Assembly: GCA_001643675.2 (NCBI GenBank) | Contig: LSRY02000039.1 | Location: forward strand, 682,001-746,000 | Direction of reading: 5' to 3' | Source of the DNA: Monocercomonoides exilis PA203 | Taxonomy: Eukaryota; Protista; Preaxostyla | Length of the DNA stretch: 64,000 nt | Shown here: positions 9,755 through 58,162 of the stretch, one piece after another | Layout of the letters: each line of letters opens with the position of its first letter | Numbering within the stretch: position 1 is the first letter of the stretch | Made by a program: the position numbers and the translations under genes | Notes under the pieces: model-generated | What the model was told of the DNA's origin: nothing | Seen by the model: only the letters and a program-made list of their open reading frames with translations | Databases searched by the model: none

Positions 9755-9853
9755 ATTAAAGTTCAGAGAACCTTTATTCTCCAGAACAAACGAAAACAAC
9801 AACACCTCTTGTTATGAGAGTGAAGCCTGTATTAAGGGCTCAGTCGCTTATCA
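9755..9853 (+). repeat. DIRS left terminus / left ITR
   Basis: GAACAAAC..AACACCTCTTGTTATG..CCTGTATTAAGGGCTCAGTCGCTTATCA is the inverted repeat of 45980-46049; 9755-9816 is complementary to 45701-45763. Confidence 0.85.
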
Positions 9854-9935
9854 GATCATAATTATTGAAAACACTGCAACAGATCCTGCATCGGGACTGG
9901 GAAGTATTTTTACACTCAGCGGATCAATAGGCAGA

Positions 9936-10240
9936 GTGGAATTAGCTCAGACCACCTCCTCAGGCAGTGTCCCACCTCTGCAACCAGAACAATATTCATT
10001 AGGAGATACCTCTTCCGCTTCATCCCCGAATGGAAAGGATAGTTTTGAGACATCATGCAGAGAATTATTTGGGTTAGAAATCTTAGAATCCATTTTTGAT
10101 CTGATTATCGACTTTCAAGATACAGCTGACTCAGTTTCTTTTTTTGAATTAATATCCTTCCCCCCATTCATCCCATCCAAGGTTCACGAGTTTGCAAGAT
10201 CATCCAACTGTGACAAAATTGCACAAAATTCAAACAACTT
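9936..10240 (+). pseudogene. DIRS gag-like ORF, 5' part
   Basis: ORF directly after the left ITR; ...AQNSNN|L continues in frame at 23661 once the 10241-23656 element and one ACTT copy are removed. Confidence 0.65.
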
Positions 10241-11329
10241 GGGTGATTTTTTTTGATATCATAAAAAATTCCGAAGTTTGATCATAAAAAATTTTCATTA
10301 AGGGTTGGATTAATTAGAAAAACGAAAGTGATGATCATGCAAATATATTGATTAATAAATAATTATTATTAATTGCTTATTGATGTTTATTTGAAATACA
10401 TAGTTTTTTTTTCATATTTTGAGAAATTGATATTATTTCTTCAAAAAATTTTCGATAATATGATAAACAGAACAAAACATAAGTTATCTTGTTTGAAAAG
10501 CATGAAAACAATAATTAATAACACTCAACCAATCAATATGGGTATTTTTTTTTGAAAAGTCACAAAATATTAATTGATCTGAAAATCAGATCACGAGTGA
10601 TCAAAAATGTTGATCATTCCGTTACCATCATTTATTGCTGAGTATTATTCAATTGAGTTTTGTCACACTTATCCCCTAATATTACGTTTTTATAAAACAG
10701 ATTTCAAATACACATTTAACTATTGAATCACTTTTATGATTTAAATTTTTTTTTTCTTGTTTTTTGAAGTTACAGAAAAATTTGTTTATATTTCTTTGTT
10801 TTCATTTCAACTGTTCAAGTCTACGTTTTGATTTTGCGAATCGAGACTTCTTTTTCAGTATTTTCCTATATTGAAAGATAAATAGATTTTAACTTGCTTT
10901 AATTTGAATATTTTATCAGAAATTATTAAAAAAGAACATTTCATCGATACTGTCCTCATTGAATTGAAAGAAATTCAAAAAGTTGTTAATACAGAGCAGT
11001 TATTAATGTTATTGTAAAAAATTGAAGTTAGATATGTTAATTTTCAAAATAAATCACCATTTATAACAAACTATAAAAAACAATCTTTTCTCTTATTTTG
11101 ATTCATACAGTTTGTATCATCAAATTTCTTTCACCTCAGAATGTGCCTTTTCCTTCTCCCTTCCATTTTATATTGACAAATTATATAAAAATATCTTGCC
11201 ACTATCTTTTCAAATAGCATAAAATAAGTAGGTTTTTTCTGCTGGTCGACAATTCTGATGCAAATGTGAATGCTATCAGCTCTTCGGGTGGAACTTCTGG
11301 CTGACATTATAGGAAATGTCTCATCAAAC

Positions 11330-12900
11330 TTCTTGTTGCGCAGCCAGTTAAGCAGTCGTCTCATCGCTCAGCGCCTTCGTCTTCTTCAATTTCATAAATT
11401 GGATCAGCACTCCGATCAACTTCGCAATTCCGGAGGAGGAGAAGCACAGAGAAAAAAGCGGCAGGAGATGATCAGCCATCATCTTCGTCATCAGCACATT
11501 TGATTGACCCTTCGGATGCATCGGAGGTGGCGGCATCATACACGTCGGCAGCTGGGGTGTATGAAAATCACAAGAAGTCGTTGCTGAGAGAGCATCAGAC
11601 TCCTTGAGGGATATGCTGTTATGTGTCAGGCGGTGTTGCGTGGGGGTGTTGTGTGTGCGTACGATGTCGCGCTTTTGGAGATGCTTTCGGTTCCGCTGAT
11701 AGCGCTACTTCCATCGCTTGCAGCTTCGGTGAACACGAAGTCGGGGAGCAAGCGGATCTTTGCGGCAGCAGATGTGATTGCGTTCCCGTCGATCTACGAT
11801 CTGTTTGACCCGTCGTTGCTTCCGTCGGCGATAGCGCGTCTGGTGTCGCGATCGCCGCAGTTGAGGCGTGTGGAGATGAAGTTTGAAAACAAAGTAATAA
11901 ATGTGCAAAGTTGGAGAAATTGCGGAGAAGGAATTGGAGGAAGAGGGAGGATGAGAATGGAAGATGTGTTCTGTCACCTGCAGCGATTGAGCTAGCGGTG
12001 CTGGAGGAGCACGAAGAGGCGAGGAAGGAGAAAGGGGGACAAAGAGGGAGAAGAAAAGGGAGAAGACGATGGAGGGAGAGATGTGTTGAAGAATAAAATA
12101 AGCAAAAAGAGACCAAGATGTAGATGGAGAAGATGCATGCAGAGTTCTTCATGCTTCTGTATAAGATCCGAGACACGAGACTATTTCGAATCCGATGATG
12201 GAAACGCAGATGCAATAATGTTTCCAGTGTTTCAACTGAACAATTGAAGCGGAGGAGCAGCTTATCGGAAAAAGACGATGAAGATGGAATCTGATGTGAT
12301 ATGCTGGGGAGATCCATCGATTTCATCACAGAAACATTCTCATCATCATTTTGTGGGGCTTGTTGAAGCGATGCGAATGATGAAATGGAACCTTTTTTCT
12401 TTCTGAACTTTTAGCTGCCAATGCAGCCATAGCTGTAGCTGCGGATCTTTTTAGATGTATTCTAGTTGTCTGTGTTCCGTCTTCCATCATTTGATTCGGT
12501 GCTGGGGATGTGAGGCATCGTTACCACTTTCACACGATGCGCTTGAGCCAACCGGATGAATACAATGTGGCTGACTGGAAAGTGCTTCAGATGCAGTTTG
12601 ATTTCAGAGCGATTTGATTAGGCAAAGAGTTAAAGCTCGATGAAACGGTCTGAAAGAAATTTTCGAAGGAATCGTAGGTGAAGTCGTACAGGTAAAATTG
12701 AGGTTGGACTGAAGCTGAGAGTGAAGGTTTTGAGAAATAGGACGTGGAGAATAAAAGATGTGTTGTAGGCATTGTTTCGGATGAAGTGTATGCTGGCATA
12801 TCTGGTGGAGCTGTTAGGGCTGCAGATGAATTGAAATTAAGTGGAAGATGCGATATGATTTTGGCTGCCACTTGAGGACGGCAGCGCGCGATGCAATTCG
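11330..12900 (+). pseudogene. Family X degenerate copy (part 1)
   Basis: 11355-11550 is visibly similar at DNA level to 39936-40125; ORF 11621-11995 (LPSLAASVNTKSGSKRIF..SRSPQLRRVEMKFENKV) is homologous to 7117-7422 (-) and 40279-40551 (+). Confidence 0.6.
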
Positions 12901-15099
12901 CAAAGCGATAAATTGACAGATGAAGATGTTGAAAAAGCATACGTCTTGTCATGCTTCATCAACATCTTCTGCTTCTGCTTCTTCAGCACAACACAAACAG
13001 GTTCCGAGTGAGAAAGCCTTTAAGTGTGCATTTGAAGAGATAGATCATTCAATTTATCTATCCACATTTTCATCAGCTTTGCCATTTTCATCACATAAAT
13101 CTTCTTTTTCTTATTCTTCCTCTTCTTCCAATCTTATCGATTCTGATTTTTGCTTATTCTTTGAGAAATAAATTGTATTTTTTTCTGCATTTCCTTCCGT
13201 TCCGTCAATTATCCTTTTTTCATCTTCCATTTCCTGTTTATTATCACCTTCATTTTCTTTCATAGTACTTATCGCTCTAAGCAAGCATTTCAATAATCTT
13301 GATACGTGTTGTCTTCTTTTAACATATTTCATTTCAAATGAAGGAAAAAGAGAATAAGAAGAGGAAGAATTAATAAAAGAAGAAGAAGAAGAAGCTCTTA
13401 GCGATGAAGCAACATTTCCTGTGTTCAACATGCAAGACGAGCGTCTGACAATCGACTGAATTTCTTCAAACAGCTTGTTCCCTCTGGGAACTATTCATTT
13501 GGAAAAATAATACACAGTATTCGTCTTCTCTTTTGGCTTTCTTCTTCGATTTCTTCTTTTTGTCAGGCATTTTTTTGTGGAAGATATTCAAAAAGAGCAT
13601 TTGAAGTACCTTCAGAGCAGTTTGACCAAAAGATCACGTTAATTGAGATTGAAAGATATTTCATTCTGTGCAAAATTGAATCCTTCTGATGCGATGTGTC
13701 TTGCAGCTTGCAATTAGACAATTTCCAGTTTGTGTGAATTCTTTCGATCAACGAACACATTCAAAATTATTTCCTCTTTCATCATCTGCTGCTCGATCCA
13801 TACAAGCATACTCTCCATCCATCTCTCACCTTTTCCTCCATGTGTGCCTCCTTTAGTGATGCTAGTGAAGCGGAGCAGCCAGTTGCGAATCGAGAGAAAG
13901 AGTTCAACAAGATAAAATTCCAGTGAGTGAATTATTTAAGGTTGCTGTGTAGATCTTATGGTAAATGAAAGTGTGCTGATCGACAGGCTCGAGCTCAATC
14001 ATCATGTTGCTATGCATGAAACCGGATTGATGTGACCTTGTTCTTTAGCTTGTCAAATAAACAGATGAATGCTTCTGAATGGACATCTGCATTCGTGCTG
14101 GTTGCTGAGCGAGTAAAGGCTTTCTTACCCTTCACCATCTTCTCCACAGCTTGTAACAACTGTTGATTTTGATTTTGCATCAGTCTTTGTCTTTTGTTCT
14201 GATTCGTAACCATCTTCTGCGTAAGCTTTTGCTTTTTCTTCTTCTTTTTTGTTTGCTTGTTAATCAGTTTCTGTTATTACTCAATTTTTATTCTCTCCTT
14301 TTTGAGTGTAGAGCACTTTGAAGAAGAGGGGATTGTTGACAGGCTGAGGCATGGAGTTCAAAAGAGGTCACGAATGAGAAAAAAGGAAGAAGCTGGTAGA
14401 TTAGAGAGAAGATGTCAGAGAAGAGGAAGAGGAAGGACAGATTTTGGATGATGAATTTTTGCATAGAGTACATGCTCATCCAAGGAGTGTGACGCTTGTT
14501 TTTGTTATTCGTTTGGAAGCAAGCGGGACAATCATATTATGATAAAAGTGATTGGAGAGAAGAAGGAGATGCGTGTAGAGTGGGAGGGGTTTGTAGGGAA
14601 GACAATTGTAAAGAGGATAATACAATAGGACGGTGAGATGTGTGTCACGTTTATTGGGGAGAGGCTGTTTTGGAGGAGAGAGTTGAAGAGAAGTGGGAGA
14701 AAAAGAGAGATGAGATTGTTTATTGAAGAGAGATGAGTGAAAAGTGAAAAGTCTGGTGCAGAATTTGCGTTTGACATTTGATGGGAAAATGTTTATTTTC
14801 AATTCGGACACAGAGAGAGAGACGATAGACGAGTTTGCTGCAATTGAAGATGCTGTGATTCATTAAAGTTTTCCGTTGATATTGAAATGAAAATGAAGTG
14901 TGTAATCTGCCGAGTCTACAACAAGGAATGGACGATTTGGTTGTTAACTCTGGCATATTCGATGATTGCCAAGAAGAGAATTAAATATCGGATCTGTCCA
15001 AGGAATCGTTCTGGGTATCAAATAGTTGCATCATCTGCATTCCGTAAGATGTTAAGTCTTCTTCGGGTTGATTTAGATGTTTTCTTTTCTATTTTTCTT

Positions 15100-17000
15100 C
15101 TTCTGCGCAATGATGGAACTGCTGGTTCTGTCGCCTACAGCGATTGCGCTGAATTTGCCGGAAGAAAGATAAGAAGAAGAAGACGTTGGAAAGGAAAAGG
15201 AGGCGAAGTGGATGAGTGGGCTGGCAGAGCAGCTGTAGGAGAAGGATAAGATCATCTGGATGAATCAGAGGAAGATTCCGGAGCTGAGCGAGAAGCACAA
15301 CAAAGAGGTGAAAGAAGTGAAGCAGGTGAAGGAGAAGAAGTGCTGGGCTCAGCAAAGAGGAGTGGTGAGCGTGGATGGCAAGCGGAAACTTGTGGGTTGG
15401 GGTGTTACAATTTCCATATCTTCTTCATTAATTTATGCGTATGGCTGGCGGTTCCATCTTTGATTTCCTTAATTCTGTTGTTGGGGCTGTGTGAAAAGTG
15501 CATGTGCTGACGACAAGCAAGCAGAAGATGCTGTTCAAGGAGTCAATTGAGAAGCAGAAGTCAGAGATTGAGCAAAAGAAGCATGAGATAATCAAAATGA
15601 AGGCGTTGTATGAAGAGACAATGGAATATCTGGCTGGGCAGGTGAAGGTGCTGGAAGAGAAGACGGGGAGTGGAAAATTTGTTAGTGGAAGGGAAGGTGT
15701 GACAGAGGAGAAATGGGTCAGTGCGAAGGATGGGTCGAGGATAAAAAGGAGGAGGAACAGAAACTGAGGCGGAGAACATTTGGAAGCGGAGGAGGGTGAA
15801 AATGAAGAAGAAAGAGATGCATGTACGCTGTGTGAGATTCTGGTGTTGCCGTGAAAAGAACCGAAGAGAAAGGACGAAGATTGGATGTCAACAGAAGTAC
15901 CAATAGAAGTAAATAAAAAGGAAGGGAAGACGAGTGTTGTGCAGCGGCTGCATACGCTTCTTAAGCAGAAGACTAACCGCAGAGACTGTGAAGAGTCGGA
16001 GTGGATTGTGAAGTTGTTGAGTGTAACGGGGTTGAGAAATCTGATACAGGTGGTGAATCATTACTGGAAGTACAGATGATGATGGAGCATCCGATAAAAA
16101 CGGTCTCTGTTCCGATGGTGCATGTGGAATACGAAGCGATGCATGCGTTTCGGTTGCCACAAACGCGGAGGTCGTCAGTTCCGATGCAGATGCTGCTGAT
16201 GCCGCTAAAGACAGGGCTGCGACAGAAGTTGGCGTGGACGCTGTCGATGATCCAGGGAATATTTAGAGACAAGATAGCGGCAGACCTGGGCAATGGCAGC
16301 GCTGGGTGGGAAGGTGTGGTGCTTCCAAGGCAGGTCCATGTGGACTTTATTCATATACGACTGGGGGAGAAATTCTCGGAGAAATTGAAGAAAGAGGTAG
16401 TGCAGTTGGCAAGGATGCATGGGGAAGAACTGTTCCGGAAGGACTTGCTGAGATGGAGCAGTTTGGGGAATTTGTGCAGAAGGAGTAAACTGGAGGTGAA
16501 ATGCAGTTTTCCTAACAACTTGACGGTGCTTGAAGTTGTATCGAGAAAAAATTGAAGTGTCTTTTGGTTGCTTGAGGAGATACAGTCGGGGAAGAGATTT
16601 GCTGAAATATCTGTGTTTCCGGCGTTTTTACTGAACTTCAGGATAGAAGCAGCTTCTATATGTTTGTGACGAAGCTGATCTGCGAAATCCTCATCTGCGG
16701 TCTTTGAATAATGAGATTATGAAGACAGAAAGATGCACTGGACAACTTAAAGCAGGAGCTTTATGCAGTATCGAAGGTGACTGGGGAATGGATTGGGCTG
16801 AAGCTACCAGTGGAGATTATACAATCGATGGTGGAGAAGAAAGAATGGCGGTAGGCGTTGTTCCAGATGGTGCGGCTGCTGCGAGGGCTGTTGCGGCTGA
16901 AGCTGTGGAGGAACGACTCAAAAAAAAGCGATCTGCTTTGAGTTTCCTTTGGAGGATGGGCAGCGAGTGGTGCGGTTTCTGCAGACGGTGGCATGAGGAG
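15100..17000 (+). pseudogene. Family X degenerate copy (part 2, coiled-coil region)
   Basis: EQL*EKDKIIWMNQRKIPELSEKHNKEVKE matches 6770-6860 (-) and 40670-40760; VVQRLHTLLKQKT..MMEHPIKT resembles 41640-41860. Confidence 0.55.
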
Positions 17001-17339
17001 GGAGTTAATAGCAAGGCCTTGCCATGTTCTTCATTGGCATTGACATCCTCCTTTTCGTATTCTTTTTCTAATTATTCTTCCTCTTCCTCCTACTCCTCTT
17101 TCTCTTTTTTCTCTTCTATTCTTCACTTATCGATTTTTATGTTTTCAATTTTTCTTCAAATTTTTATTATGTTTCATCAATTAAGGTCATTCTCCTTCCA
17201 TCACTTGTTTCTTTTCACATTCATTTTCTTTCAAAGAATTTTTTGAAAGTGTCAAATATATAGTTAACATTGAGAATGTTTTGTCTTCTTTTTGCTTATT
17301 TCTGAGTAAATAACAGAAAATAAGAAGGTGAAGAAGGTG

Positions 17340-17900
17340 AAGAAGAATAAGACAAATATTGTTTTGAACAAATTGGAATGAAATGTTGTGAAATTGGAGT
17401 GTTAAATGAATCAGGAGAAGAAAGAGGAGAAGAAGAAGGAGAATAAGATGATAATGAAAAAGATAAGGAGGAAGAGGAAGATGAAAAGGAAGAAGAAGAA
17501 GAAGAAGAAGAAGAAGAAAAAGAAGGAGAAGAAGAAGAAGAAGGAGAAGGAGAAGGAGAAGAAGAAGAAGAAGAAGAAGAAGAAGAAGAAGAGAAAAGGA
17601 GTGGAGAGGGAAGAAGCAGATGTGATTGGAGAAGCGATGGGGTCAACAGAAGAGAGAGGAGAAGGAGAAGAAGGTTGAGAACGAGGAGAGAATGAAGAAG
17701 AATCAGAAGAGGAGGAGAGGAGAGAATAGCTGGTTGATAGGGATTGAGGAGAAGAAGAGAAAGAAGAGGAGGAGGAAGAAGAAGAAGATAATGGCGAAGA
17801 GGAAGAAGAAGAAGAAGAAGAAGAAGAAGAAGAAGATAATGGCGAAGAGGAAGAAGAATAAGAATAAGAAGAAGAAGAAGAAGAAGAAGAAGAAACACTT
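17340..17900. repeat. GAA/GGA-rich microsatellite tract (poly-Ser coding remnant on minus strand)
   Basis: Long (GAA)n runs, same texture as the Ser-rich host gene at 49981-64000. Confidence 0.85.
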
Positions 17901-17916
17901 TAAGAACAGAAGCTCC

Positions 17917-18760
17917 TTACGAATTTCTCGAGCAGTTCTTGAATGAGGAGCTTCCAACTGAAACACTTCCCGAAGTCGAACTGTCAATCGAAATGATGCA
18001 ACCTTCAGACAATTTCACTCCATCGGCATCAATTCCATTCAGCACAGCATTTCCACATTGCCCAATCTCAACAACATTTCTTGTTGATTCAACATGTTCC
18101 AGCTTCACATTTATCAATGATATTTCATCTCCACAAAACAGAAACAATGATTTCTTGAATGATAGCATTGTTATTGAGCAGTTGTCAACATGCACAATTC
18201 CATTTTCGATGCTCAGCAATGATGAATCGATAACAACAGCTTCAATGTTTTCTGATGCAAATGTCGAAGAAAAATCAACAAATGAAAGAGAAAGTTGGCC
18301 ATTTGCTTCAAGAATAATTGAATTGCCTGAAGAGGATAATGACTGATCAAAGTTGAATTTCAATCTTTCAATCCGAACAATCCCTGTTGTTGTGATGATG
18401 CTTCCCTCGTCACTAACAATTGTTGAGTTCAGATGAACCAAAGCAGATGAAATAGATTCAAGGGAGCGCACAATAACATTCAACGCACTGCTTTCTCCAT
18501 TGATGATCATTTCCCCTAATATCAACAGCTACGAATTGCGCGAAGGGATGATGTGTTGCACTCCAACATCTAATGACTCACAAGTAAAACGAAATTCTCC
18601 GCATTGCTTGCTGTCTTCCTAGTTTTTATCAGCAGAAGATACAAATAGCGTCTCACTCTGGTATTTCACATCATTCAGCTGAATATCCATTTCTTCTTCT
18701 AAAGAGTCTGTTTCGCAGTCCCATATTGTAGGATATTTCACAAAATGTGCTCTGAAATAT
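17917..18760 (-). pseudogene. Internal fragment of Cys-rich surface protein family
   Basis: IWDCETDSLEEEMDIQLNDVKYQSETLFVSSADKN*EDSKQCGEFRFTCESLDVGVQHIIPS followed by beta-helix-like ORF 17917-18525; truncated at both ends and fused to the GAA tract. Confidence 0.6.
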
Positions 18761-21700
18761 GCAGCAAACTTTCTAAGCTTAAAAAAAGAAAGTTTATATT
18801 TTAATGAATAAATAATGCATTCATATAAAACCAAAACGAAAACTGTTTGACTTACTTGTTTTATATCTTTATCAAACTTGTGGGAGGATTCTTTGCATTT
18901 ATTAAAATTCCAGGCGCATTCTGCGCAATGAAAAAATATAATCAAATAAAATATTGATTTATCAACGAATCTCAATTTGTTTATGAAAAGCAATCAAAAC
19001 AAACTTTGAAGATTTCATGAGTCAACAATTATAAAATAGTCCAAGCTTGAAAAAACCTTTTCACATTGAAATACTGAAATTTTTATTTTGATCAAAATAT
19101 TGGATACATAATATTTTGATCCAAAATGTTTATTATCGAAAAAAGTTAGTTGTGAATCGACAAACATTACTGTGAAAGTTTGAATTTTTCATTGAAATAA
19201 TGGAAACGGAATGTTTTTTAATTAACTTCCATGGGTCAGATTTCTGATCTGTGGTGACTTTTCAAAAAAAATTACCCATATCTTAAGCAAAAAATCGTAA
19301 AACAATGTTATAAAAAAAGAATAGAATAAGAAAAGTTGAAATCGATAAATATTAAATGAAACCAATTAATTTTCAAGTGTTTCATCATCTGAATCGCTAA
19401 CCTTCATCTTCAATAGCCTTTTTTCCTTCTAATGCGTCGATTTCTAAATCTTCCGAAAATTTTGAGATTTGTGTTTTCTTTTTTATTCCTTCTTTCAAAT
19501 TTTAAGCGTCCTGGTTTTCGTCAGAAATTATCATCTCCAATTCCCTTCACAATCCATTCACCCTGGGCATTTTCCATACGAATTCGCTCTCCCAACTCCA
19601 TAGCCACCTTGTACAATGATATATCCCGCTTTTATTCATTTTCATTCTTTTCCGCCTCCTGCCCTGAAAGAAGCACAAAAAACATCAACAAAGAAATGTT
19701 CGTATAAAGAAAAATAAAATAATGACCAAACTGCGCTTCAACTTCTTTTTGCCAAGCACACTAATTTCCATATCCATCATCATTCAAAAACTCAATTTCA
19801 TCATTTCAGTCTCAGAATGGTGAAATTGCAGCAAGGAAAGAATCTCTAAAAAATACATCTTGCATCTCACTGGAGGATCTTTTCAACCTGTCCACATTGT
19901 GTTGCCTGTTAGGATATGTTTTTCTGTTTTTTGCATGATCATCTCCTTTAATAATATTCTCAAATACCAAAAGAAGTATTTGATGTCTATCTCATCAACA
20001 CCTTGCACATGAGGGATATGGGGTAGAGAAGAGATGGAAGAATATTTTTTGTGGCAGGGGGCGAGAGTTGGGTATTTTATGGAATGTTAATCTTTCGAGA
20101 GGGGTTTTTGAAAGGAAGAAATTCTGAGACAAAAAGATGGGGAAGGAACAGGCGGAGATTTGTCGAGGAAAATGTAGAAAATATATAGGGAAGTTGCTGA
20201 GGATGATAAAGAAGGTGATTATTGTTGATTGGAGAAATAGATTTTGAAAAAAAGGAAAAGAGGGTGAAAGCCGATGAGAAGAGGGAAAATGAGAAATGTT
20301 GAAAGACTTGAAAGAAGGGTATTTTTTTGAGAGGAGAAGAATGTTTTATGGAAGAGGATGGGAAAGATGAAGAAAAGGAGGGGATTGATATTTTTTGAGA
20401 AGTTTGGAAGCCAAATTGAAAAGGAAAACAACAAAGAAAAAAACTGTAAGAATTTTTCATTTTCTATTTTTTGAGGGGAAAGGAAAGGAAATTGCAAAAA
20501 GAAAGTGAATTGACTTTGGAAAAATACAGCTTTATTGATTTCCGCAATCTATTCGTCATATATTTTGTGACTGAATTTTTCAAACAAATCAGAAGTTTAT
20601 ACATCAAGCGAGACGTTTTGACCAATCAACAACATCACGTAAAGCGTCCTCGTCATCTATTTCAGGAATGATAGTTAACCGATTAATTTCTCTGCTACCA
20701 CGTCATTTCCTTCTTTTTCGTCTTCTTCTTCTTCTGTTAATCCCCTTTCATTCAATCAATCATCTTCCTCATTTCTCAGTTTGCAAATATAAAATTCGCC
20801 TTCTCACAATTCACTTGCTTGTTCAGCAACAAGCACGCCTGTTATGAATTTCATGGCCAAAAATTTACAAAATTTTCTTCAGTCAAATATTGCTTTTTCT
20901 TCTTCTTCTTCGTCGTCGTCTCATCTTCGTCTTTGTCTTCGTCTTCATCTTCGCGTTTTTCTTGACCTTCTTCACATTTTTTGCTATTAACCTCATCAGA
21001 TGTTTTGTACACTTATATTTTTCATACAAATAGGCCAGAATCATTTTCTGTATATGGAAAGAATTGTAAGATAATCACTCAAAAGCTGCCAAAGATTCGA
21101 GGATATCCGATTTTATTGATAAGCTTGAAACTGCCTGATAAAAAAATTTTGTTTACAATTAACTGCTCCTTCGAAGTTTTCTAAACAGACACAATATATT
21201 GTCCAATCAATGAAATCATATGAAACCATATCAGCATCTTCTTCGAAAATATTTAAAGATAATAAATGGATTTCTCTGTAACGGCATGCATTCACATTCC
21301 TCCTCTTTTTCAATGATATTTCCTACAACTTCGTATTGGATCATTCCATTTTCCTTGGAATGAATATGAGCTGTTCAATCAGCAGCCAGATAATTCGCCC
21401 AAATAAATATTTCATTCAATTTTCCCACTCTCAACAGTATCATCATCGATATCAAAGCCTTCTGTTGGATTGCAGGATGCTCATCTGAACCTCTCTTCTC
21501 TTCTGCAGCACACATCCTGCTATGTTTTGGAGCTTCGAATAGAATTGATGCGCAAGCTGCGCTGAATGGAGTGAATGGGCATCGAATGAAAAATGGCAGT
21601 GGAAGAGGGAAGGAGCTTCAAGGCACATTACATTCGTCCCCTCGCTTTATCACATAGCCAAGAAACGAAGAAAGAGGAGAGTGGGTTCAAATGGAAAAGG

Positions 21701-24072: not shown

Positions 24073-24074
24073 TA

Positions 24075-29139: not shown

Positions 29140-29147
29140 AGACCTTG

Positions 29148-29960: not shown

Positions 29961-29984
29961 CAACCGGTTGCGCAGAAAGGAAAG

Positions 29985-31161: not shown

Positions 31162-31301
31162 CAGTGAAGTACGGTAATAATCACTTGTTCTGGGTGACGT
31201 GAAGAAAAAAATTCGTCACGTCCGTCACAAATTTTCCACTTCAAAAAAAAAAGTCGAGAAAGATACAATCAATTTTTATCACTTTATTTGAATGAAAGAT
31301 T

Positions 31302-34708: not shown

Positions 34709-35179
34709 GAAAGATTATTCAAATTGCATTCATTTTGATATTTTTTTCTATTTTTATGTGAGATCACAAAATCCCATTTTCTCGTAATTGAAAATGAAAC
34801 AATTAATCTCTTTGAGATGACAAGTGTTTGCTCCAATTCATAAAGGCAGGGGCTGAATACTCATTGTTGAGAAAAATGTTTATCGTCCTTATTGATAGAC
34901 AATTTCTTTTCTTCACACATAAGCTCATTCAAAAAGAATGATAAAAATTATGCTCTTTTTTGGATTCAATTTTTCCAAATTGCGAGAAACGGGCAACACG
35001 AAAATTCTCTCAGGTTGTGAAAATGTTATTGAATTCCTCATCATAATGATTTATTCTAAAGAAAAAATTTTTCGAATTTGATTTTGCAGATGGAAGATTT
35101 TGATGAGGATGAACAAAAACAGAAAACCCTTGAAAGTTTTCCATTTAATGAATGAGGATAAATTTTTGTCAGTTTTCGA

Positions 35180-36300: not shown

Positions 36301-38124
36301 GTCTTCATGAAATATTTAATTATAACCTCAGGATTATTATTATTCTCGTGAATTATCGTTGAATATTTCTGATCAATATATGAATAATGGAGGAAATGAA
36401 ATGATATTTATTTCATGTCTCAAAATTTCAGTTTTTCTTTTTGTTGTATCATTGTACCAAACAGAAAATAATATGACTTGAAGACTTTTGTCATAGTTAT
36501 ATCAATTCTCATTTTTTTCAAAATAAAATAAAAGAAGAACAGAACGAGAAAACTTCTTTTGACTTTTCTTTTCCTTCTTATCAATTTCAGAAGTTTTCCT
36601 CTTACGATTTGCATCACATCATTCTGAAAAAAAATGCAATTATCCATTCATTAATTCGATTGCTCCAGCAGGCTCTTTTCAGCACTTTTCTTAAATTTTT
36701 TGCAGCTCAAACAACTTTATTTCATTCGCTTTCAACATGAAAACCTTGAACAATGCCAGAAGAGTGCATGGGTCAGAATATTAAAAATTTCCAAGGTTTA
36801 TAAAAGATATTGAAAAGCTTTAACAGCATTTAATAATCAAAATGCAAATTATTAAACAAGCAAAACAATCAAATTTCAAATTTTGACATTTCAAACTGCG
36901 TCTCTTTTATGTAACAAGTGAAAATCATCACAAAAGTTCAAAAAAAGAAAATTTGCTTTTAAATTACTTGATAATTCCAAATTTCACACATTTAATTATC
37001 TTATCAATGTTACACAAATCACAATTTGACAAAACATTCTTGTTTTTGTGTCAATCAATTTCAAAATCTTCTATAAGCGAAGGTGCTTTATTGTTGATTA
37101 TTTCCGTTAAAAATATCCATCAATGGCATTTGTAAATAAGTCGTATCTGTATAAATCCTTTAACGAGTTCAATTCACATAAACTTTATTCATTGAACTTA
37201 TATTGTTGATGCTGCATTTCATCATAAATAGTGGAATGAGTTTGTTATTCTCTCTTGACTTTATCATTTACAACCTTATTATTAAAGTCAAACAAAAAAA
37301 TCATGAAAGTTATAAACTTGGAAAACTTTGTTCACATTTATTCCATATTCAGTTTTTCACAATTAACTTAGTTGTGGAGGGGAGGAATGTGCTTTCTTTT
37401 GTTTCAATTTTGTATTTTTATGTTTCTTTCATCAAAATAGAAGAATAACTAAAATGCAATGAAATGTCATGGTTGTTTGATTCTGAAAAATTAAAAAAAT
37501 TCAAGAGATTTGGCTAACATGTTTTGCTATTCTTCAACTTCTTTTGTACTTTTCGAATAAAAAACATGAAGTGACGTCAGTGACGTCTGTGAAGTCAGTG
37601 TCTTGTCTAAATTCCTATTCTGCCTTTCACGTCAGTGAAAAGCACATATTGGGATATTTGAATTCGAAAATTTTATAATTGTGAAACTTACAAATATATA
37701 TATTGGTTTTTCTTGTGACGTGGAAATTTTTGTCACTTCCGTCAAAAATAGAAAATGTGACGTAAGAAGTCACCACTTCACCCAGGGCCAATAATCACAT
37801 TCGATTTTGAACAATTTTTTGTGATTATAACCGAACTTGATTACAACCGATTTTTTGATCAAAACGCACCCATTATATTTTTGTTGAGATATTTTAATGA
37901 TTCTATAATTATATAAGTTGCTTGAAAATCAAACAGAATGTGATTCAATTGTGTGTTAATATTTTTATGTTTTGTCCATGATTAATTTTTTGCATTATCT
38001 TTTGTCTATAACAGAAACAGAGAAAATACATTTCTTTCAATTATTTGGGTGAAACATTGAATTGTTGGAAGAAATATTAATGAAATCTGATCATTTGTAA
38101 AACTCCACAGACATGAATCCATAT

Positions 38125-38364
38125 GGGTAATTCTTTTTGAAAAGTCGCAAATGTTTAATTTTCAAACAAATCAAAAATCTCACTTCTTGATCAAATTTCG
38201 GTCCCCTCTCATGGAACTTCACCAAAGTGGAGGATATAATTTGACAATGCTATTTATCACATTCCTGTAAAGTTGCATAGACGGGATTTGAAATTTGATC
38301 AAGAATAGAGATTTTTGATTTGTTTGAAAATTAAACATTTGCGACTTTTCAAAAAGAATTACCC
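38125..38364. mobile_element. 240-bp MITE with 75-bp TIRs
   Basis: 38125-38199 vs 38290-38364 inverted (2 mismatches); GGGTAATTCTTTTTGAAAAGTC ends resemble those of 10540-19277; TSD ATAT. Confidence 0.9.
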
Positions 38365-39849
38365 ATATGGAATGCTTGACATTTCTGTATCTATCGAAAT
38401 CAACCGTTTGATTCATGAAAGACAACTCAATTATTGGAACAAGATAAAAGTTACAGCAAAACAGTCGCAAAAATACGAAAAGAGGAAACGAAGGATAGCT
38501 GGGCTATCATGAAAAACAAACAATAATAATTTTTAATATCAACTACAATCAGAAAACGAAGAAGATATAAGAAAGTCTAAAACATTTATTGCTGTAAGTT
38601 TATTTCATAAAGAAGATGTACACAACAACGATTTAAATGAAGAAATAACAAACGAAAATATAAAGAAGTTTTCTTCAACATCATCCACTGATTTTTATCA
38701 TCCTGAAGTTTCATCATAATTTGTTTCATATGAAAATTCACATTATTATTAAGGAACTGAAAGTGAAGTTTCCATAAGATGATGAATGAACAAAGAGTGA
38801 AGAAGAGCCATCTCCAACAGAGAAAGAACCTTCTCAGAAAGAGTAGTCATTTGGCTCTTGTGGATGAATTCTTTTGGAATTTCATTGCAATGAAAAAGAT
38901 TTGAATTGTCGTTAACACCCCAGAATTCGAGTCATTTGCTCGCACATACTCAAATATTGCTTGACGAGAATAAAGAAAGAGCTTATCTAATTCGAAAACT
39001 GTGCAAAAAGACAAGGGTTTGAACATTCTGTTTGTTGATGGAAAGAAGCTTTCTGAATTAACTTTCAGCGAATTGGATGTGACTTCATCGCCAAATGCCT
39101 TGACTTCTTCTTCTTCTTCTTCCATACAGTCACTTCATCTGCTTCCTCACTCTCATCTGATTCCTCTCCTTCATCTGCTTCTTCTCAACATCAATCGTCT
39201 CGTGCAACATATCGTTCCACTTTCGTTGAATATGCACATCTGAAAGAAGAGCAAATGTTGAGCTGCCTTGTGAACATCAAGATGATGATGGAGTGTCTGA
39301 GGCAGCCTGGGCAGCACTTGAAACAAGAAAAGAGAGAAGACAAAGCATACACTGCCATCCGGTCAGCGGTACTGATGTGGCTGGCAAGGTGCCGATATCA
39401 TCGAGAATCACCGAAAGGAAAAGGAGCGAAAGTCATTCAAAGAAGATAAAAGACGTTTCAAACAAAACATTGGTTCCGACAAATGCTGGAAAAGATTCAA
39501 GCAGAGCGTAAGGAGAAATGTCTTGAGTTGCAGAGAAATCAATGCGAAGAATGGGACAATGTCAAGCAAAGCAAGAATGTTCACTTTTATCAGTCATCAC
39601 TCAGCTGGAACGAATGAATCAGACGTTCAATAGACACGCACAAGTCTGTTGATCTTAAGCTTGTAAAGAATATTGATATTTCACCAAAGTTAATGCATTA
39701 TCCAGATTCAACTTAGCCATTGAATTAATCTCCAAATTCTTCTTCCACTTCTCATTTCAACGTCTAACCTTAAGTGATCTTGTTACATCTTTTTCAACAA
39801 TTAGAAAACTTCGAGCTTTCGCGGTTAGTCGATCTTTCTATCCGAATGT

Positions 39850-42065
39850 GAATGTTGTGCTTGTTTCTCCTGTAGGACTTGAGGCAGACGTGGTGTTGTA
39901 TCCGAAAAAGCTTCTTGTTGCTGTTGAAGTGCAGTAGTCGTCTCTTCACTCAGCACCTTCATTTTCTTCGTCATCTTCAATTGGAGCAGCACTCCAATCA
40001 AATTCACCATTCCGGAGTCGGAGAAGTGAAGAGAAGAAAGCAGCAGGAGATGATAAGCCATCATCAGCTCCTGCGATTGACCCTTCGGATGCATCTGCGG
40101 TGGCAGCACCATACACATCAGCAGGAGCAACAGACAACATCGAGAGGTTGCTGGAGTGCATGAAAATCACAGATATTCGTAACTGAGGGAGCACCAGACG
40201 CTGCGGGGATATGTTGTGGCTCGGCGGGAGGTGCTGTGTGAGAATGCTGCTTGAGCCTGCATTGTCGCACTTTCGGCTATGCTTTTGGTTCAGCTGGTAG
40301 CGCAGCTTCCGTCGCTTGCAGCGTCGAGGCGTGTGATGGTGAAGTTGGACGACAAAGTGATGGTGCGAGGGGTTGCAGGGCACGAAGTGGGGGAAATTGT
40401 GGTTAAAGGGCTGTGGATGGTAGGAATGAGAATGGAGGATGTAGTTCTGCCTCCAGCAGCGATTGTGCTTGCGGTGCTGGAAGAGCGAGAAGAGGCAGAG
40501 GAAGGAAAAAGAAGAAGAAAAAGAAGGAAAATATGGCGGATGATGAATTGAAGTTCAGAAAAACCATGAAGAAGCAAAGTCGTACTTGAATAAGAGGTAT
40601 TTGGAGTTAAATATGCTGCTTCAGAAGATTTGTAATAATAAACGGATAATAAAGCATACGAACGAGCTGGCGGAGCGGCTGCAGGAGAAGAACAAGATCA
40701 TCCGGATGCTGGAGTGGAAGATTCTGACGATGAGATAAAAGGACACCGAAGAAGTGAAGGAGCTGAATGACAAACTTGTGACAATAAAGGAGAAGGTCGA
40801 TTTTATTGATGTTGAGATTGAGAAGGAGAAGAAGTGGAAGACGCAATTGTGTGTGTTGGTGAGTGTGAACACCGAGAGTTCGCTGGAGGGTTGGGAACGA
40901 AGCTTCCCAAGCTTTCTTTGTTTGCATATTAGGGTTTAGGAAAGGTTTTGTCTTCGACTTTGTTGATTGCGCCTTCTGGGCTATGAAAAATGTGTGATGA
41001 ATGATTTGCAGCAAGCAGTGGAGATGGCTGCGTTGCGATGTTTTGGTCCAACCCCATGGAAAAGGATTTATTGCGAAAGTAAGGAACATTGTGTGTGTTG
41101 TTAGAGAAGCTAACAGCTGTTGGAGAGAGTGTTCCAGTGGTTAAGAAGGAGGAGACATAACATGAGGCAGAAGAGAAACAAGATGTTGAAGAAAACGAAG
41201 ATGCTGATGGTGCTGTCGAAAGAACAGTTGCAGACGAAAAGCCAGAAGATGGAGATGTTCAATGAGGAAATTGTGAAATAGCAAATGATTATTGCGCAAA
41301 AAAGCTGGAGCAGAAGAAAATGTAAGAGACATTTGAAGTGCAGGTGAAGGAGCTGGAAAAGAAGATGTGGAGTGGAAAATCTGAAAGGGGATGTGAATAA
41401 CGGACAGAGGAGAAAGGAGCGATATGGAGATATGGAGAAAGGATAAAGAGGAGGAGGAACAGCAGTTGAGGCGGAGTATTGGAGGATGCAGAGGAGTGTG
41501 AAAAGGCAGAAGAAAGAATTGAAAGAGCGCTGTATGGGATTCCGCTGTTTCAGCACAACGATCAGAAGAGAGAGCATGAGGACTGTATGTCTCCGGGAAT
41601 TCAAACAGGATGAAAGAAAAAGGAAGAAGAAGTGAAGGTGATTGTTGCTCAGCTGTTGTGCATACATCTTAAGCAGACGACAGACAGCGTAGACTGAGAA
41701 GGGTCGAAGTGGCTTGAGAAGATACCAGGAGAAAGGGGGAAGTGTTATCTGGATCTGTGGGTTTGCCTTTGCCACTGTAATCTCCAGTGATGGAGAGGTT
41801 GATGAGCACATCGACTAAGTTTCTGGAACAAGAGGATTACGAAATAGAACACATGCTTTTAAATAAAGCTCACATTGAAGCCATCAATGAAGATGCAGCG
41901 ATTTCTAAAGCCACAAAAGAAAGGTTTTCACTCGCAGCTGGTGTGATCGCAATCGAAGATCTGAGTGATATTCTGAGATTAGATCGCAACAGGCACAGGA
42001 CGGATCATTTCTTGTTAGCTGCTGTCAGATTTATCTGGAACTTGTGTTATTTCAAGTTGATTTAA
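39850..42065 (+). pseudogene. Family X degenerate copy
   Basis: Homologous blocks to 11330-12050 and 15200-16150, in the same order. Confidence 0.6.
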
Positions 42066-42208
42066 CAAAGCTCATTCCATGTTTGCAAAAAGGAGAAAAA
42101 TGCAATATTCATTTTTTAATTTATCATATTGAAAGTATTGTGAAAAAGATATTCATATACTGAGTGAAAAAAATGTAACATTGAAAGATTCATAATCTCA
42201 AATTGTAG

Positions 42209-42601
42209 TATACCTCTGTGACATGACAAGAAAAAAATGAAAAAATGAAAAAATGACTGACAAAATATTTATGATTTGTCAAAAAGGGTTATTTTTAACG
42301 ATTTTTCAATTTTTAATTTCAACAATAATCAATTTGAAAACCAACACACAACAAATTTTATTATTTTGAAAAAATCAAAATTTTTGTAAACTTGATCAAG
42401 TTCCCAATATTTAATTTTTTTGACATGAAATGTCAGTTGAGGGATTTTTTGTAACAATTTGTCATTGACCGTCACTGACAAAATACGAAAAAAACAATCA
42501 GATATTGCAGATTCTATCAACAAATCTTTTCCAAAGTGCTTTGCAAAATCTTTTGAAGTTGTCGCAATTGTTAATTTAATTGTCATTTTAAACAAAAATA
42601 A

Positions 42602-42642
<41 letters not shown>

Positions 42643-42688
42643 TGTGACAGACGAGGCTTCAAGTGATTTGTCAGGTCACAGAGGTGTG
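42209..42688. mobile_element. ~480-bp hAT-like MITE
   Basis: TIR TATACCTCTGTGACATGACAA / CACACCTCTGTGACCTGACAA; diverged 8-bp flanks AATTGTAG / ATTTGAAG; many internal TGACA/TGTCA motifs. Confidence 0.6.
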
Positions 42689-42723
42689 ATTTGAAGCAAC
42701 AAATAAACATGAAGTTTTTAACA

Positions 42724-43473
42724 GTGTCAAAATTTTTTTTGAAAAGTTCCTTTTGTTTAATTTTCAAATAAAGAAAAAATTTTATATTTCGATCAAATTT
42801 CTATTCACATTCACCAAATTTTGCTGTCATGAAAACACAATCTTGACAATATTATTATTTCCATTTTTGTGAATTTACGTGATTCGGAATAGAAATTTGA
42901 TCGAAATATAAATTTTTTCTTAGGACACTTTCTCAGCAGCTAATGAACGGAGAATTTTGACACATCAATCGTAAGGTGAATATGAGTATGAAGCATTCTG
43001 AGAATACATCATTCTTGGTCTTTCATTTTTTAAAAACAAATTTTGTTTTTCGGAGAAATTCGGAAAAACTAATTACTCCGTGTTTCTCCGAAAAACAAAA
43101 TTTGTTTTTAAAAAATGAAAGACCAAGAATGAAGTATTCTCAGAATGCTTCATATACTCATATTCACCTTACGATTGATGTGGGAAAAAATCAAAATTCT
43201 CCGTTCATTAGCTGCTGAGAAAAGGCTACTGTCCGGCCATTAGGAAAGTGTCCCCCTATAAGGAAAGTGACTATAAAGAAAAAATTTTATATTTCGATCA
43301 AATTTCTATTCCGAATCACGTAAATTCACAAAAATGGAAATAATAATATTGTCAAGATTGTGTTTTCATGACAGCAAAATTTGGTGAATGTGAATAGAAA
43401 TTTGATCGAAATATAAAATTTTTTCTTTATTTGAAAATTAAACAAAAGGAACTTTTCAAAAAAAATTTGGCAC
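42724..43473. repeat. ~750-bp compound palindrome (foldback)
   Basis: Arms 42724-43058 and 43083-43473 are reverse complements apart from short deletions in the left arm; axis near 43070; each outer ~200-bp part is itself a hairpin related to the 38125 MITE. Confidence 0.92.
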
Positions 43474-43559
43474 ATATTGAAGTGTTTTGATTTTTTTCTC
43501 CTTTAACAAATGTGTAATCTTCTTCGCAATCTGTTCTTTTTCTTTTCTCTGTGCACGGC

Positions 43560-45052
43560 TGAAGGCATGGATATTTTGTTATCGTTGTTTGAATCAAATG
43601 TTTTGTTGCAATTTTGTCCATAAAGGAATCAATTTCTTCATATGCAGATAAAGTTTTTGGTGATTCAATGTTTTCTTAGAAATAAAATTTCAAATTTTTC
43701 CATTGATGAAACGCTTCAGTTGTGCTGATAACCTTTTCTTAAGGATTTTCAAGTTTTTCTTTTAAAGGCTTTGGAATGTCATCTTAAACTTCTTTTCTTA
43801 TTTTTACTTCAACAAAGTTTCCAATTTCAGTGTCTGAATGAGATTCTCTCGTTGTTGTATTATCATCATTTGTATGATAATCTTCAAGTGTTTCATTTTC
43901 AAAGCTATTGTCTTGACTTTTTACTCTTTCAAACAGATCGGTGTATCCACTCATTTCACTTTCTTTCATAATTGATAATTCTTTCTTTGGTTCCTTTATA
44001 TTCTTCCATCCTGCATGTTCGAAACAATGCTCAATTGTTTCCTTTTTTTACGTCATTCCAAGCTTTTGAAATCATGTTCATCGTTTCAAATAAATCAATT
44101 CTTGTATCATCTTTCATTTCAATCTTCGCTAATTTCTTTCGAAGAAGAGAGGTTTTGAAATAATGTTTGAATGTTTTTGTTATTCCATCGTCAAGAGGTT
44201 GAATAATTGAAGTGACGTTGTGTGGAAGATAAAGCAAGGAAATATGTAAAAAAATCTGTTGAAATCAAACTTTGTGCCGTGTAATTATCCACAACCAATG
44301 CTGTTTTTCTGTTCATTGAAGCCATTTTCGAATTAAGCAATTCAAAGCAATAATTATACAAAATCACATTCATCCTTGCATTTTTGGAATGGGTGTGATT
44401 GACTGGAAAATATTTTCGTATGAAACACCTCGGATTTTTCGATTTTCCAATCACAAAAGGTAAATTTTCTCTCCTGTCATGTTAACGCACATAAATACTG
44501 TGACTTTGTCTTTAGGTGTTTTCATTCCAACTGCTTTTTCAGAACCTTCTGAGAATGTTCTGTCAATAAATTCGTGAATATGCAAACCCAATTCACCTCC
44601 GTTAAAAACATTTTCTTCGCCAAATTCGCTAATAATTGTCGGAAGAGTCTGTTTAATCCAAGTTTCTGCTGATGATACATCGGCTGAAAGAACCTCTTCA
44701 GATATCTTTTTCGATTAAATGATTGCTATTTATTGGCAACGATGGATTTGTTGATCTAATTTGCCTAAACCAGATAATCAATGCTTTGTCAATTTCAGGA
44801 TAAGTTGAAGTTCGAATTTTTTTTTTTTTTGGTTTTTACATTTTCAGAAGCCTTTTGAATAATATTATCTCTCGATTTCCATGTTTTTGTAATTGTTGAA
44901 GGATCAACATGATAATCAGAGCAGATGCTGTTTCGTGGAGTGGGATGTGTTTTCTTCAGATGGTTGATAATATCCAATTTTTGTATTGAAGATAGCTGAG
45001 TTCTTTTCTGTTGCTTTATTGATTTTTCCATCATTTTGATATTTTTTGCCAC
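43560..45052 (-). pseudogene. pogo/Tigger (CENP-B-like HTH + DDE_1) transposase, frameshifted
   Basis: KRTQLSSIQKLDII..YHVDPSTITKTWK (psq-type HTH); ENVFNGGELGL; KDKVTVFMCVNMTG; VIGKSKNPRCF; LVVDNYTAQ; LPHNVTSIIQPLDDGITKTFK; C-terminal IQTTITKY (PIP-box-like). Confidence 0.92.
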
Positions 45053-45170
45053 AATTTTGGGTTCAAAATGTCAATCATTTTTAAATCACTATATATTTTA
45101 GTTTGAAAACATTCACTTTAATTGAGAATTAATGTAATCTTTATTTATACATTTTTATTGATCAACAAAT

Positions 45171-45437
45171 GGGGCAAAATATTTCACTTCAGGCATTTTC
45201 ATTGAAAAATTATGCATTTTTCATTAACTTTTTGAGTTAAAAAAACACAATTAAAATTGGTCAATTTTTTTGACATTCGTGAAATGTTAAAAAACTTTAT
45301 GTTTTGATTTCAACGATGCTTGTTTGCGGATATGAAAATTAAAGTTTTTTTTAAAACCTGAGAAAAGGAAATAAAGTTATGAGTGAAACAATTTTTAAAT
45401 GCCTTGTGCAAAAAAAGCTTGAAAGTCCGTATTTTCC
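45171..45437 (+). mobile_element. MITE family B, partial copy upstream of the transposase
   Basis: AAAT|GGGGCAAAATATTTCACTTCAGGCATTTTC ... GCTTGAAAGTCCGTATTTTC, similar to 8527-8790. Confidence 0.7.
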
Positions 45438-45698
45438 TTCAAATGAACAAAATTTCAAAAATCCCATTTCAAATGAAAATTTTTTATTATTAGCAATTTT
45501 GGCTTGATTACAACCGATGAAAATACACACGAAAATTTGCCAAAATAAATGATTCACGAAAAAATGTGATTACTCGCTGTCTTGATAATAACCGAGGTGA
45601 TTATAACCGAACTTTACTGCACGACAATTAGAACAGTTCAGACAAGCGAGGCGAGTCACATTCATGTAGATATATAACAATTCCCAACTATTATTATT

Positions 45699-45795
45699 CC
45701 CATAACAAGAGGTGTTCTAGTTGATCGTTTGTTCTGGAGAATAAAGGTGCTCTGTGCTTTAATTCGTAAAGAACAAACAAAACTTCAACACCTCT
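45699..45795 (+). other. DIRS internal complementary region (ICR)
   Basis: 45699-45763 is complementary to the left terminus (9755-9818) and 45764-45795 to the right terminus (46024-46055), joined at GCTTTAAT|TCGTAAAG. Confidence 0.85.
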
Positions 45796-45979
45796 ATTTC
45801 TTGCCACGAGTTTAACTCTTCCCACTCTTCGAGTTTATGTTATCTCACAGTTGACATTCATGTTCGTTTTGTTTCACAACAGCCTCTGTGCACTTTGTTT
45901 TTGGCACAATTTCCTTATTTTCTTTATTATTCGTTCAATATTTCTATTCTTTCTCATATCCACCGTATTTCACTTCAAT

Positions 45980-46055
45980 TGATAAGCGACTGAGCCCTTA
46001 ATACAGGGTCTGCTCCCATAACAAGAGGTGTTGTAATTTTGTTTGTTCTTCACGA
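45980..46055 (+). repeat. DIRS right ITR / terminus
   Basis: TGATAAGCGACTGAGCCCTTAATACAGG..CATAACAAGAGGTGTT..GTTTGTTCT, inverted to 9783-9853. Confidence 0.85.
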
Positions 46056-53449: not shown

Positions 53450-53481
<32 letters not shown>

Positions 53482-55109: not shown

Positions 55110-55148
<39 letters not shown>

Positions 55149-58100: not shown

Positions 58101-58162
58101 TGGAGAGAGAAGTGGAGGATAAAGTGGATGAAGGAGGAGTGAATGACTCAATTTGAGAAGAA

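Follow-up and report, generated by a model that had tools for sequence, protein, structure and literature searches.

A stretch of 64,000 nt from the genome of the oxymonad Monocercomonoides exilis PA203 was analysed (assembly GCA_001643675.2, contig LSRY02000039.1, positions 682,001 to 746,000 of the forward strand; hereafter the window, to whose first letter all coordinates refer unless a locus is named). Between positions 9755 and 46055 the window holds the remains of a DIRS1-type retrotransposon, lying in four pieces. We consider it highly probable (roughly 93%) that these are a single old DIRS copy split by three later cut-and-paste DNA transposons, the first and third of which were themselves hit again. 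The outcome would be one 4.4-kb element spread over 36.3 kb. The locus is an ordinary nested-transposon cluster, and the apparent genes within it are transposase remnants and captured fragments.

The DIRS pieces and their junctions

The four pieces were queried separately against the organism's own genome and then aligned, with extra flank, to six fetched loci. Three of these are uninterrupted reference loci, L025 (C69), L028 (C2) and L029 (C80), and three are further relatives (L026, L027 and L030). The pieces in the window are as follows.

9755-10240, plus strand: piece 1, left terminus with the left inverted terminal repeat (ITR, 9755-9853) and the start of a 5' gag-like frame, which continues as an open reading frame (ORF) in L025
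23657-25140, plus strand: piece 2, the remaining gag-like frame and the reverse transcriptase (RT); its first 4 nt are the second copy of the target-site duplication (TSD) of element A, described below
29140-31161, plus strand: piece 3, tyrosine recombinase (YR) preceded by putative RNase H and methyltransferase-like regions; it begins with the second copy (8 nt) of the TSD of insertion 2
45620-46055, plus strand: piece 4, end of the YR frame, internal complementary region (ICR, 45698-45795) and right ITR (45980-46055)

Pieces 2 and 3 recovered the same six near-full-length relatives (C69, C48, C13, C2, C80 and C9) at 80-88% identity. These six are the best relatives of all four pieces within that range of identity, and other DIRS subfamilies reach 64-75%. 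The three complete copies (L025, L028 and L029) are 4,421-4,427 bp long and uninterrupted, with the four pieces mapped to them in order and orientation; the pieces in the window total 4,414 bp. On L025, piece 1 aligns from 9755-10210 to 1028-1482, piece 2 from 23658-25142 to 1510-2997, piece 3 from 29140-31162 to 2988-5013 and piece 4 from 45621-46060 to 5012-5450, and both order and spacing are the same on L028 and L029. The other three loci each deviate in one terminal region, through a shorter right end or some 550 bp extra in the left part, and match elsewhere.

The breakpoints coincide with the exact stop of homology to the reference copies. In all six relatives (6/6) the end of the piece 2 match overlaps the start of the piece 3 match by 8 bases. 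Measured on the references, the matches overlap by 2 bp at junction 3 and by ~10 bp at junction 2, where matching Gs in the flank extend the 8-bp TSD, and the spacing at junction 1 is conserved. The overlaps therefore equal the duplicated target sites, which are ACTT, AGACCTTG and TA for the three insertions, and excising each insert together with one TSD copy gives the reference spacing with zero bases gained or lost. With slashes marking the limits of the inserts, junction 1 reads ...CAAACA-ACTT/GGGTGATT...AATCACCC/ACTT-GAGAGTTG (insert ends in a shorter reading, ...ACTT/GGGTGATTTTTTTTGA......TCAAAAAAAATCACCC/ACTT...) and junction 2 reads ...GGAA-AGACCTTG/GGCATATG...CCTATGCC/AGACCTTG-GGTGAAG. 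Junction 3 reads ...GAATA-TA/CAGTGAAG...CTTTACTG/CA-CGACAATT (shorter reading, ...TA/CAGTGAAGTACGG......CCGAACTTTACTG/CA...), and at this site the uninterrupted copies have GAATATAC(G/C/A)ACAAT. P0010, the annotated protein of the C2 copy, crosses junction 1 at residues 110/111 and junction 2 at 546/545 without a gap.

A preliminary description of this DNA, made from its letters, had proposed one DIRS element of ~4.4 kb across the four pieces and had given the peptides read across the joined ends. Both proposals hold, with colinearity to three complete uninterrupted copies, exact junctions, and junction peptides that uninterrupted copies encode in open frames ('CSRIEYTTIRTVQTSE' in L028 and '...NSSGWRVERYLIQ' in L025). 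It had suggested searching the genome for an uninterrupted ~4.4-kb copy colinear at all three junctions, and such copies were found, piece by piece, in C69, C2 and C80. The pieces are also not split among DIRS subfamilies, an outcome that it had named as a reason for doubt, as the six best relatives are identical for all four. We read the four pieces as one DIRS copy.

An arrangement of ITRs with a two-part ICR defines DIRS1-like elements (PMC3266345). The left (9783-9853) and right (45980-46049) ITRs are inverted and match at 63/71 positions. One half of the ICR (45698-45763) is the reverse complement of the left terminus 9755-9819 (58/66), the other (45764-45795) is that of the right terminus 46024-46055 (29/32), and the two halves directly abut. 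The flanks of the element (...cattaacc/ and /aaaaaaattt) share nothing, so that there is no TSD.

The RT was recognised by RVT_1 at 24335-25105 of the window (E=1.4e-21) and in the C2 copy (6.4e-24). For the recombinase, the direct match to PF00589 was E=3.6e-4, at 20.8 bits versus a cut-off of 27.1, in three of seven family proteins, the best being P0003. Relatives of P0003 found by an exhaustive phmmer search numbered 820, and those scanned (E from 1e-63 to 1e-9) pass the PF00589 threshold in the aligned region; they include P0011 (8e-63), P0018, P0021, P0041, P0059, P0074 and P0108. One springtail relative combines RVT_1, Dam, SAM-like and integrase domains. By transitive homology the family would therefore appear to encode a YR, its direct signal being sub-threshold. 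The only match of the recombinase in the PDB is an integrase at E=1.1, and the AlphaFold model of P0003 (mean pLDDT 35 with a 7-sequence alignment) is unusable. Matches to RT_RNaseH_2 (E=0.0076) and, for a 127-aa frame conserved in three copies, to Dam (E=0.021) are weak and below threshold, and no BLASTP match was found between residues 560-800 of P0010 and the Dam region of P0074.

The window copy is dead, beyond mere interruption. About 13-19 in-frame stops and several frameshifts are present within pieces 2 and 3, and piece 3 aligns to residues 2-402 of the YR protein P0003 with 6 stops. Those relatives that were opened are likewise broken into several frames. The element had been described as running from a left ITR through gag, RT, RNase H, MT, YR and ICR to a right ITR, and as reconstructable in frame. 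The first claim stands for the ITRs, the ICR, the RT and, transitively, the YR, with faint matches for RNase H and the Dam-like region; the second is true at the three junctions only and fails for the element as a whole.

Proteins of the DIRS copies are MONOS_ entries of M. exilis labelled 'Ty3-G Gag-Pol polyprotein' or 'uncharacterized', and DIRS elements are not recognised as such in the public annotation of this organism. At L028 (C2:863520-867950) the annotation divides the copy between two entries, MONOS_5062 (931 aa, 'Ty3-G Gag-Pol polyprotein') and MONOS_5063 (258 aa, 'uncharacterized'), the latter being the C-terminal part of the recombinase.

Elements between the pieces

At least ten mobile elements occupy the 32 kb between the pieces, nested to a depth of up to four levels (DIRS > pogo > H1 > H2). 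All inserted elements with resolved ends have terminal inverted repeats (TIRs), a TSD and other genomic copies, and the empty site of each nested layer is supplied by copies without the inner element. The elements and the gene-like fragments that they carry are listed below, with the strand where one was assigned.

10241-23656: element A (insertion 1, outer), putatively Sola2-like and non-autonomous; TIR GGGTGATTTTTTTTGATATCAT; TSD ACTT at 10237-10240 and 23657-23660
10540-19277: element B, 8,738 bp, nested in A; TIR GGGTATTTTTTTTTGAAAAGTCAC; TSD ATAT at 10536-10539 and 19278-19281
17920-18528, minus strand: putative captured fragment in B, a 203-aa open frame equivalent to residues 1614-1817 of a 2,545-aa receptor-type protein
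25141-29139: insertion 2, 3,999 bp, a non-autonomous Pack-type element; 8-bp TSD AGACCTTG at 25133-25140 and 29140-29147
26622-27986, minus strand: PMP/beta-helix-like surface-protein gene fragment in insertion 2, two open frames of 224 and 230 aa with a stop between them
31162-45619, minus strand: element P (insertion 3, pogo-type); TIR CAGTGAAGTACGGTAATAATCAC; TSD TA at 31160-31161, second copy CA at 45620-45621
31185-37789: element H1, inserted within the left TIR region of P; TSD (A)ATAATCAC of 8-9 bp
31302-34708: element H2, putatively hAT-like, in H1; TIR T(A/T)GACCTGTGCGAC; 8-bp TSD GAAAGATT at 31294-31301 and 34709-34716
38125-38364: M1, a miniature inverted-repeat transposable element (MITE) of 240 bp in P; TIR GGGTAATTC..., with ends of the same type as A and B; TSD ATAT
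42202-43476: two short TIR elements in P, absent from the C45 and C55 copies of P
44194-45070, minus strand: pogo transposase remnants of P; DDE_1 E=5.7e-7 (44194-44481) and CENP-B_N E=2.7e-5 (44798-45070)
45170-45440: insertion M3, ~270 bp in P, absent from the C45 and C55 copies of P; flanks share CAAATG

Element A has ~4.7 kb of sequence of its own (10241-10539 and 19278-23656). Many genomic copies at 72-80% identity are without B (including L040-L043 and L048), and such copies run from the first 296 bp of A straight to the sequence after 19278, with a 4-bp overlap (C12). The copy at L041 has the TSD ATTT. The right end of the A family (...TATGATGTCAAAAAAAATCACCC) is also present at L051 150-212 (C35:660749-660811). 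Element B has four other copies (C32, C80, C6 and C23) at about 85-97% identity, and ATAT flanks the readable ends of the copies L031-L033. A, B and M1 share GGGT...TTTTTTTGA termini and 4-bp AT-rich TSDs (ACTT, ATTT, ATAT), and in dictyostelids the TSDs of Sola2 are likewise 4 bp and AT-rich (AWWT/ATAT/ATTT; PMC3627910). No Sola2 transposase was found in any copy of A, B or M1 examined. Copies of A contained no transposase and no ORF >205 aa, and the three fetched copies of B contained no transposase and no ORF >266 aa. Judged by their ends and TSDs, the three would be 'Sola2-like' at most.

Insertion 2 is bounded by TIRs of 312 nt that are 100% complementary (25141-25452 and 28828-29139). 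Five other full-length copies exist at 80-87% identity, and 8-bp TSDs are seen in four copies (insertion 2 itself, L044, L045 and L046). Both insertion 2 and element B have the make-up of Pack-type elements, namely TIRs, a TSD, several copies and an internal host-gene fragment without a transposase. Logan contigs from two public runs (X1 and X2) connect 25132 with 29140, a configuration of the site that lacks insertion 2. Those joins probably come from uninterrupted paralogous DIRS copies; their source may also be an empty-site allele of a very young insertion 2, in keeping with its identical 312-nt TIRs. The shorter side covers only 20 nt, and the joins were not counted as such an allele.

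Element P has been enlarged by nested elements from about 6.3 kb to 14.5 kb. Uninterrupted copies, each flanked by TA, are found in C45 (6,307 bp) and C55 (6,552 bp). The C45 copy encodes an ORF of 460 aa with DDE_1 (E=2.2e-38) and HTH_Tnp_Tc5, and compared with this ORF the transposase in the window is fragmented. The family thus shows the pogo features of a transposase with DDE_1 and a CENP-B/Tc5 helix-turn-helix (HTH), a TA target and TIRs, even though the window transposase is broken.

At the H1 site the copies of P are uninterrupted. Copies of H1 without H2 occur in C53 and C62 (86-87%), and copies of H2 in C1 and C32 (93-94%). H2 has the 8-bp TSD and short TIRs of hAT elements, and the TSD of H1 is 8-9 bp. 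No hAT transposase was found, nor any ORF of at least 180 aa, in the four fetched copies of H1 and H2, and both are non-autonomous, putatively hAT-like elements. The two share no similarity by BLASTN or TBLASTX at E<=1e-3. The first of the two short TIR elements spans about 42213-42685 with ends CCTCTGTGAC...GTCACAGAGG, and the second about 42724-43473 with inverted arms of 189 nt, the limits of both being approximate. A related copy of M3 lies in the left flank at 8510-8808.

Gene-like sequences

Across the 36 kb, no open frame is longer than 263 aa. Most inter-piece ORFs were scanned directly with Pfam, which yielded no families besides the pogo domains and weak beta-helix matches. The 203-aa frame in B aligns with residues 1614-1817 of the ORF at L049 at 72% identity (E=1e-78). 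Of a kinase domain, the L049 protein has just the C-lobe, at its C-terminal end (PF07714 positions 162-257). Matches to the 203-aa frame were found at 150 or more loci in the genome, most of them in open frames of about 2,500-3,100 aa. Open in 3/5 copies of B, the frame has a ratio of nonsynonymous to synonymous substitution (dN/dS) of 0.43-0.46 between copies. In the C32 copy of B (L031 7455-8063) the ends of the frame are identical to those of the window and the middle is strongly diverged, still open (dS 0.30, dN/dS 0.46), a pattern that looks like conversion by a receptor-family paralogue.

The PMP-like fragment of insertion 2 likewise has at least 150 genomic loci, at 59-82% identity and in open frames of about 220 to 4,494 aa. 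It has a weak match to Beta_helix (E=0.0053), and its neighbours in the Atlas are a Preaxostyla cluster first, followed by DUF1565/Chlam_PMP/Beta_helix clusters. Both captured fragments are 200-450 aa long, compared with source open frames of a few hundred to ~4,500 aa (~2,500 aa in the receptor family).

Strongly G-skewed modules, mutually related, are present in B (about 14-17.3 kb) and in the pogo element (about 39.9-41.8 kb), and relatives of both lie in the left flank at 6.0-7.6 kb. With these relatives and the copy of M3 in the left flank, the pile of repeats reaches beyond 9755-46055. The G-rich module at 15.0-17.5 kb was rejected as coding sequence, since its six frames are equally conserved against a 75%-identical relative and stops occur in each. 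A 209-aa frame at 15431-16057 (minus strand) was rejected as part of the 2,545-aa receptor gene, having no match to that protein. Most of its 52 genome-wide matches, at 40-70% identity, have exactly one in-frame TGA, which could be an intron, a conserved stop or a mark of shared pseudogene ancestry. The 'cargo' ORF of the pogo element was uninformative in the Atlas (recognition 814, best score 0.84).

The other copies compared of each carrier transposon family contain the coding-like sequences too, so these came to the locus inside the transposons instead of being ancestral to it. We take the gene fragments to have been captured by the transposons and not to be old components of these. The preliminary description had counted about eight gene-like sequences and regarded them as transposed cargo rather than ancestral genes. 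They do travel with multi-copy transposon families. As genes, however, they could not be upheld, given the lengths of their frames and the stops in six frames of the G-rich modules; they are fragments and remnants. One of them, the pogo transposase, is no cargo but element P's own broken gene.

To the right of the cluster, an open frame of at least 4,671 aa occupies 49981-63996 on the minus strand, running to the final bases of the window. A PP2C phosphatase domain (E=5.6e-14) was recognised within the 1,000 aa at its C-terminus.

Order of events, alternatives and known systems

As each gap between the pieces is a TIR-bounded element with its own TSD, everything between them post-dates the DIRS copy, and on this point the earlier account was right. 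Its three removable insertions correspond to the three outer gaps and not to three events, since at least ten elements are nested there. The colinearity, element ends, TSDs, copy families, domain matches and relative order of nested layers were observed directly. From these, the following course may be proposed. An old copy of a DIRS1-type YR retrotransposon would have inserted at the locus and decayed. A Sola2-like non-autonomous element (4-bp TSD) would have landed in its gag-like region, a long-TIR Pack-type element (8-bp TSD) at its RT/RNase H boundary and a pogo element (TA) near the end of its recombinase frame. The 8.7-kb Sola2-like element B would then have entered the first insertion, and the pogo element would have been entered by several MITEs and by a hAT-like element that carries a second one inside it.

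Four observations weigh against this reconstruction. The second TA copy of the pogo insertion reads CA, so that one substitution (T>C) must be assumed. The YR, RNase H and methyltransferase signals of the DIRS family lie below Pfam thresholds when scanned directly. A, B, H1, H2 and insertion 2 are without a transposase, and the superfamilies suggested for such elements follow solely from TSD length and end sequence. Lastly, none of the public runs (four, from one sample, with short unitigs) bridges any junction with 31 nt on both sides. The failure of short-read unitigs at the junctions also speaks for an artefact, in which a Nanopore assembler stitched repeats together so that pieces and inserts are not contiguous in the chromosome, as does the composition of the region, which is almost entirely repeats. 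Moreover, the N50 of the assembly reads is 8.9 kb (PMC8767320), below the lengths of insertions 1 and 3. However, a mis-join would not put transposon termini exactly at the breaks with duplicated target sites, nor would it restore DIRS colinearity to the base at three sites. Exact ends and TSDs are found at the resolved nested layers also, and with duplications and exact ends at every resolved layer, mis-assembly is very unlikely.

Still harder to credit is that the pieces are the remains of two or more DIRS copies, brought together by chance or by insertion of DIRS into DIRS. DIRS elements do cluster and nest (PMC3266345), and this genome has many DIRS copies and fragments. However, the pieces keep the same order and orientation, abut without overlap or gap relative to the uninterrupted copies, sum to nearly the length of a complete copy (4,414 versus 4,421-4,427 bp) and differ to about the same extent from the six relatives that they share; a check of the junctions for missing or duplicated DIRS sequence found none. 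Slightly more room, within what is nevertheless improbable, is left for functional host genes among the inter-piece sequences, for example expressed spliced genes missed by ORF scans. M. exilis genes have introns and short exons could be missed, and three of five copies of B keep the 203-aa frame open, with a dN/dS of about 0.45. Yet this frame covers only residues 1614-1817 of 2,545, with no start, signal or kinase part, and its dN/dS can be a legacy of functional paralogues. In the other modules all six frames are conserved to the same degree, with stops, and the pogo transposase is fragmented. The single DIRS copy interrupted by later DNA transposons is the reading that we retain.

With its ITRs, two-part ICR, RT and YR, the family appears from its sequence to be a structurally complete DIRS1-like family in a metamonad. 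A 2011 survey was unsure about DIRS1-like elements in metamonads (PMC3266345), and no mention of such a family in metamonads was found in the literature searched. Unrelated DNA transposon families at this locus carry pieces of giant surface-receptor gene families. A broader reading, in which the metamonad DIRS1-like family stands alongside three types of DNA transposon whose receptor- and PMP-like pieces reflect a general route of capture, is tentative and on balance doubtful. If true, transposon-mediated capture may be a widespread source of the ~29 Mb of 'unclassified repeats' reported to overlap kinase genes in this genome, and of fragment shuffling in the receptor and PMP-like families. 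Repeats make up 37.8 Mb of the M. exilis genome, and 28.9 Mb of them are unclassified (PMC8767320). For the annotation of this poorly classified repeat half the locus is a base-exact worked example, defining ends and TSDs for the DIRS1-like family, pogo, two putative Sola2-like non-autonomous families, two putative hAT-like families and the long-TIR Pack-type family. It also shows that what look like genes in such regions are pieces of transposons or fragments that they captured. Nested transposons are commonplace, and the locus has no bearing on host biology beyond repeat annotation.

The retrotransposon resembles DIRS1-like elements such as DIRS-1 of Dictyostelium discoideum (PMC3266345) in its ITRs, two-part ICR, lack of a TSD and length of about 4.4 kb, and in its gag-like frame, RT, tyrosine recombinase and putative RNase H-like and Dam-like regions. 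It differs in its host, an oxymonad (Metamonada), and in the RNase H, methyltransferase and YR signals being below Pfam thresholds. A, B and M1 resemble Sola2 DNA transposons in having 4-bp AT-rich TSDs (PMC3627910); unlike them, the copies examined have yielded no transposase, and the likeness is one of ends and TSDs alone. Element P agrees with pogo/Tigger elements, which are related to Tc1/mariner, in its TA target, CAGT... TIRs and transposase with a CENP-B-type HTH and DDE_1. However, the P family (about 6.3 kb) includes ~4 kb of non-transposase sequence in common with element B and other loci.

In transduplication of the Pack-MULE type, non-autonomous TIR elements carry host gene fragments, and the TSDs of Mutator elements are 9-11 bp. 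Insertion 2 and element B are alike in this respect, each having several copies with TIRs and TSDs that lack a transposase and enclose a fragment of a host gene family, whereas their TSDs are 8 bp and 4 bp, respectively, and the donors are giant receptor and PMP-like families of M. exilis. Nested clusters, with layered insertions in regions rich in repeats and poor in genes, are known from the intergenic retrotransposon nests of maize and the DIRS clusters of Dictyostelium. As in those clusters, younger elements lie inside older ones, ends and TSDs mark the layers and the nesting gives their order. Unlike them, the cluster described here consists mostly of DNA transposons within a YR retrotransposon, up to four deep.

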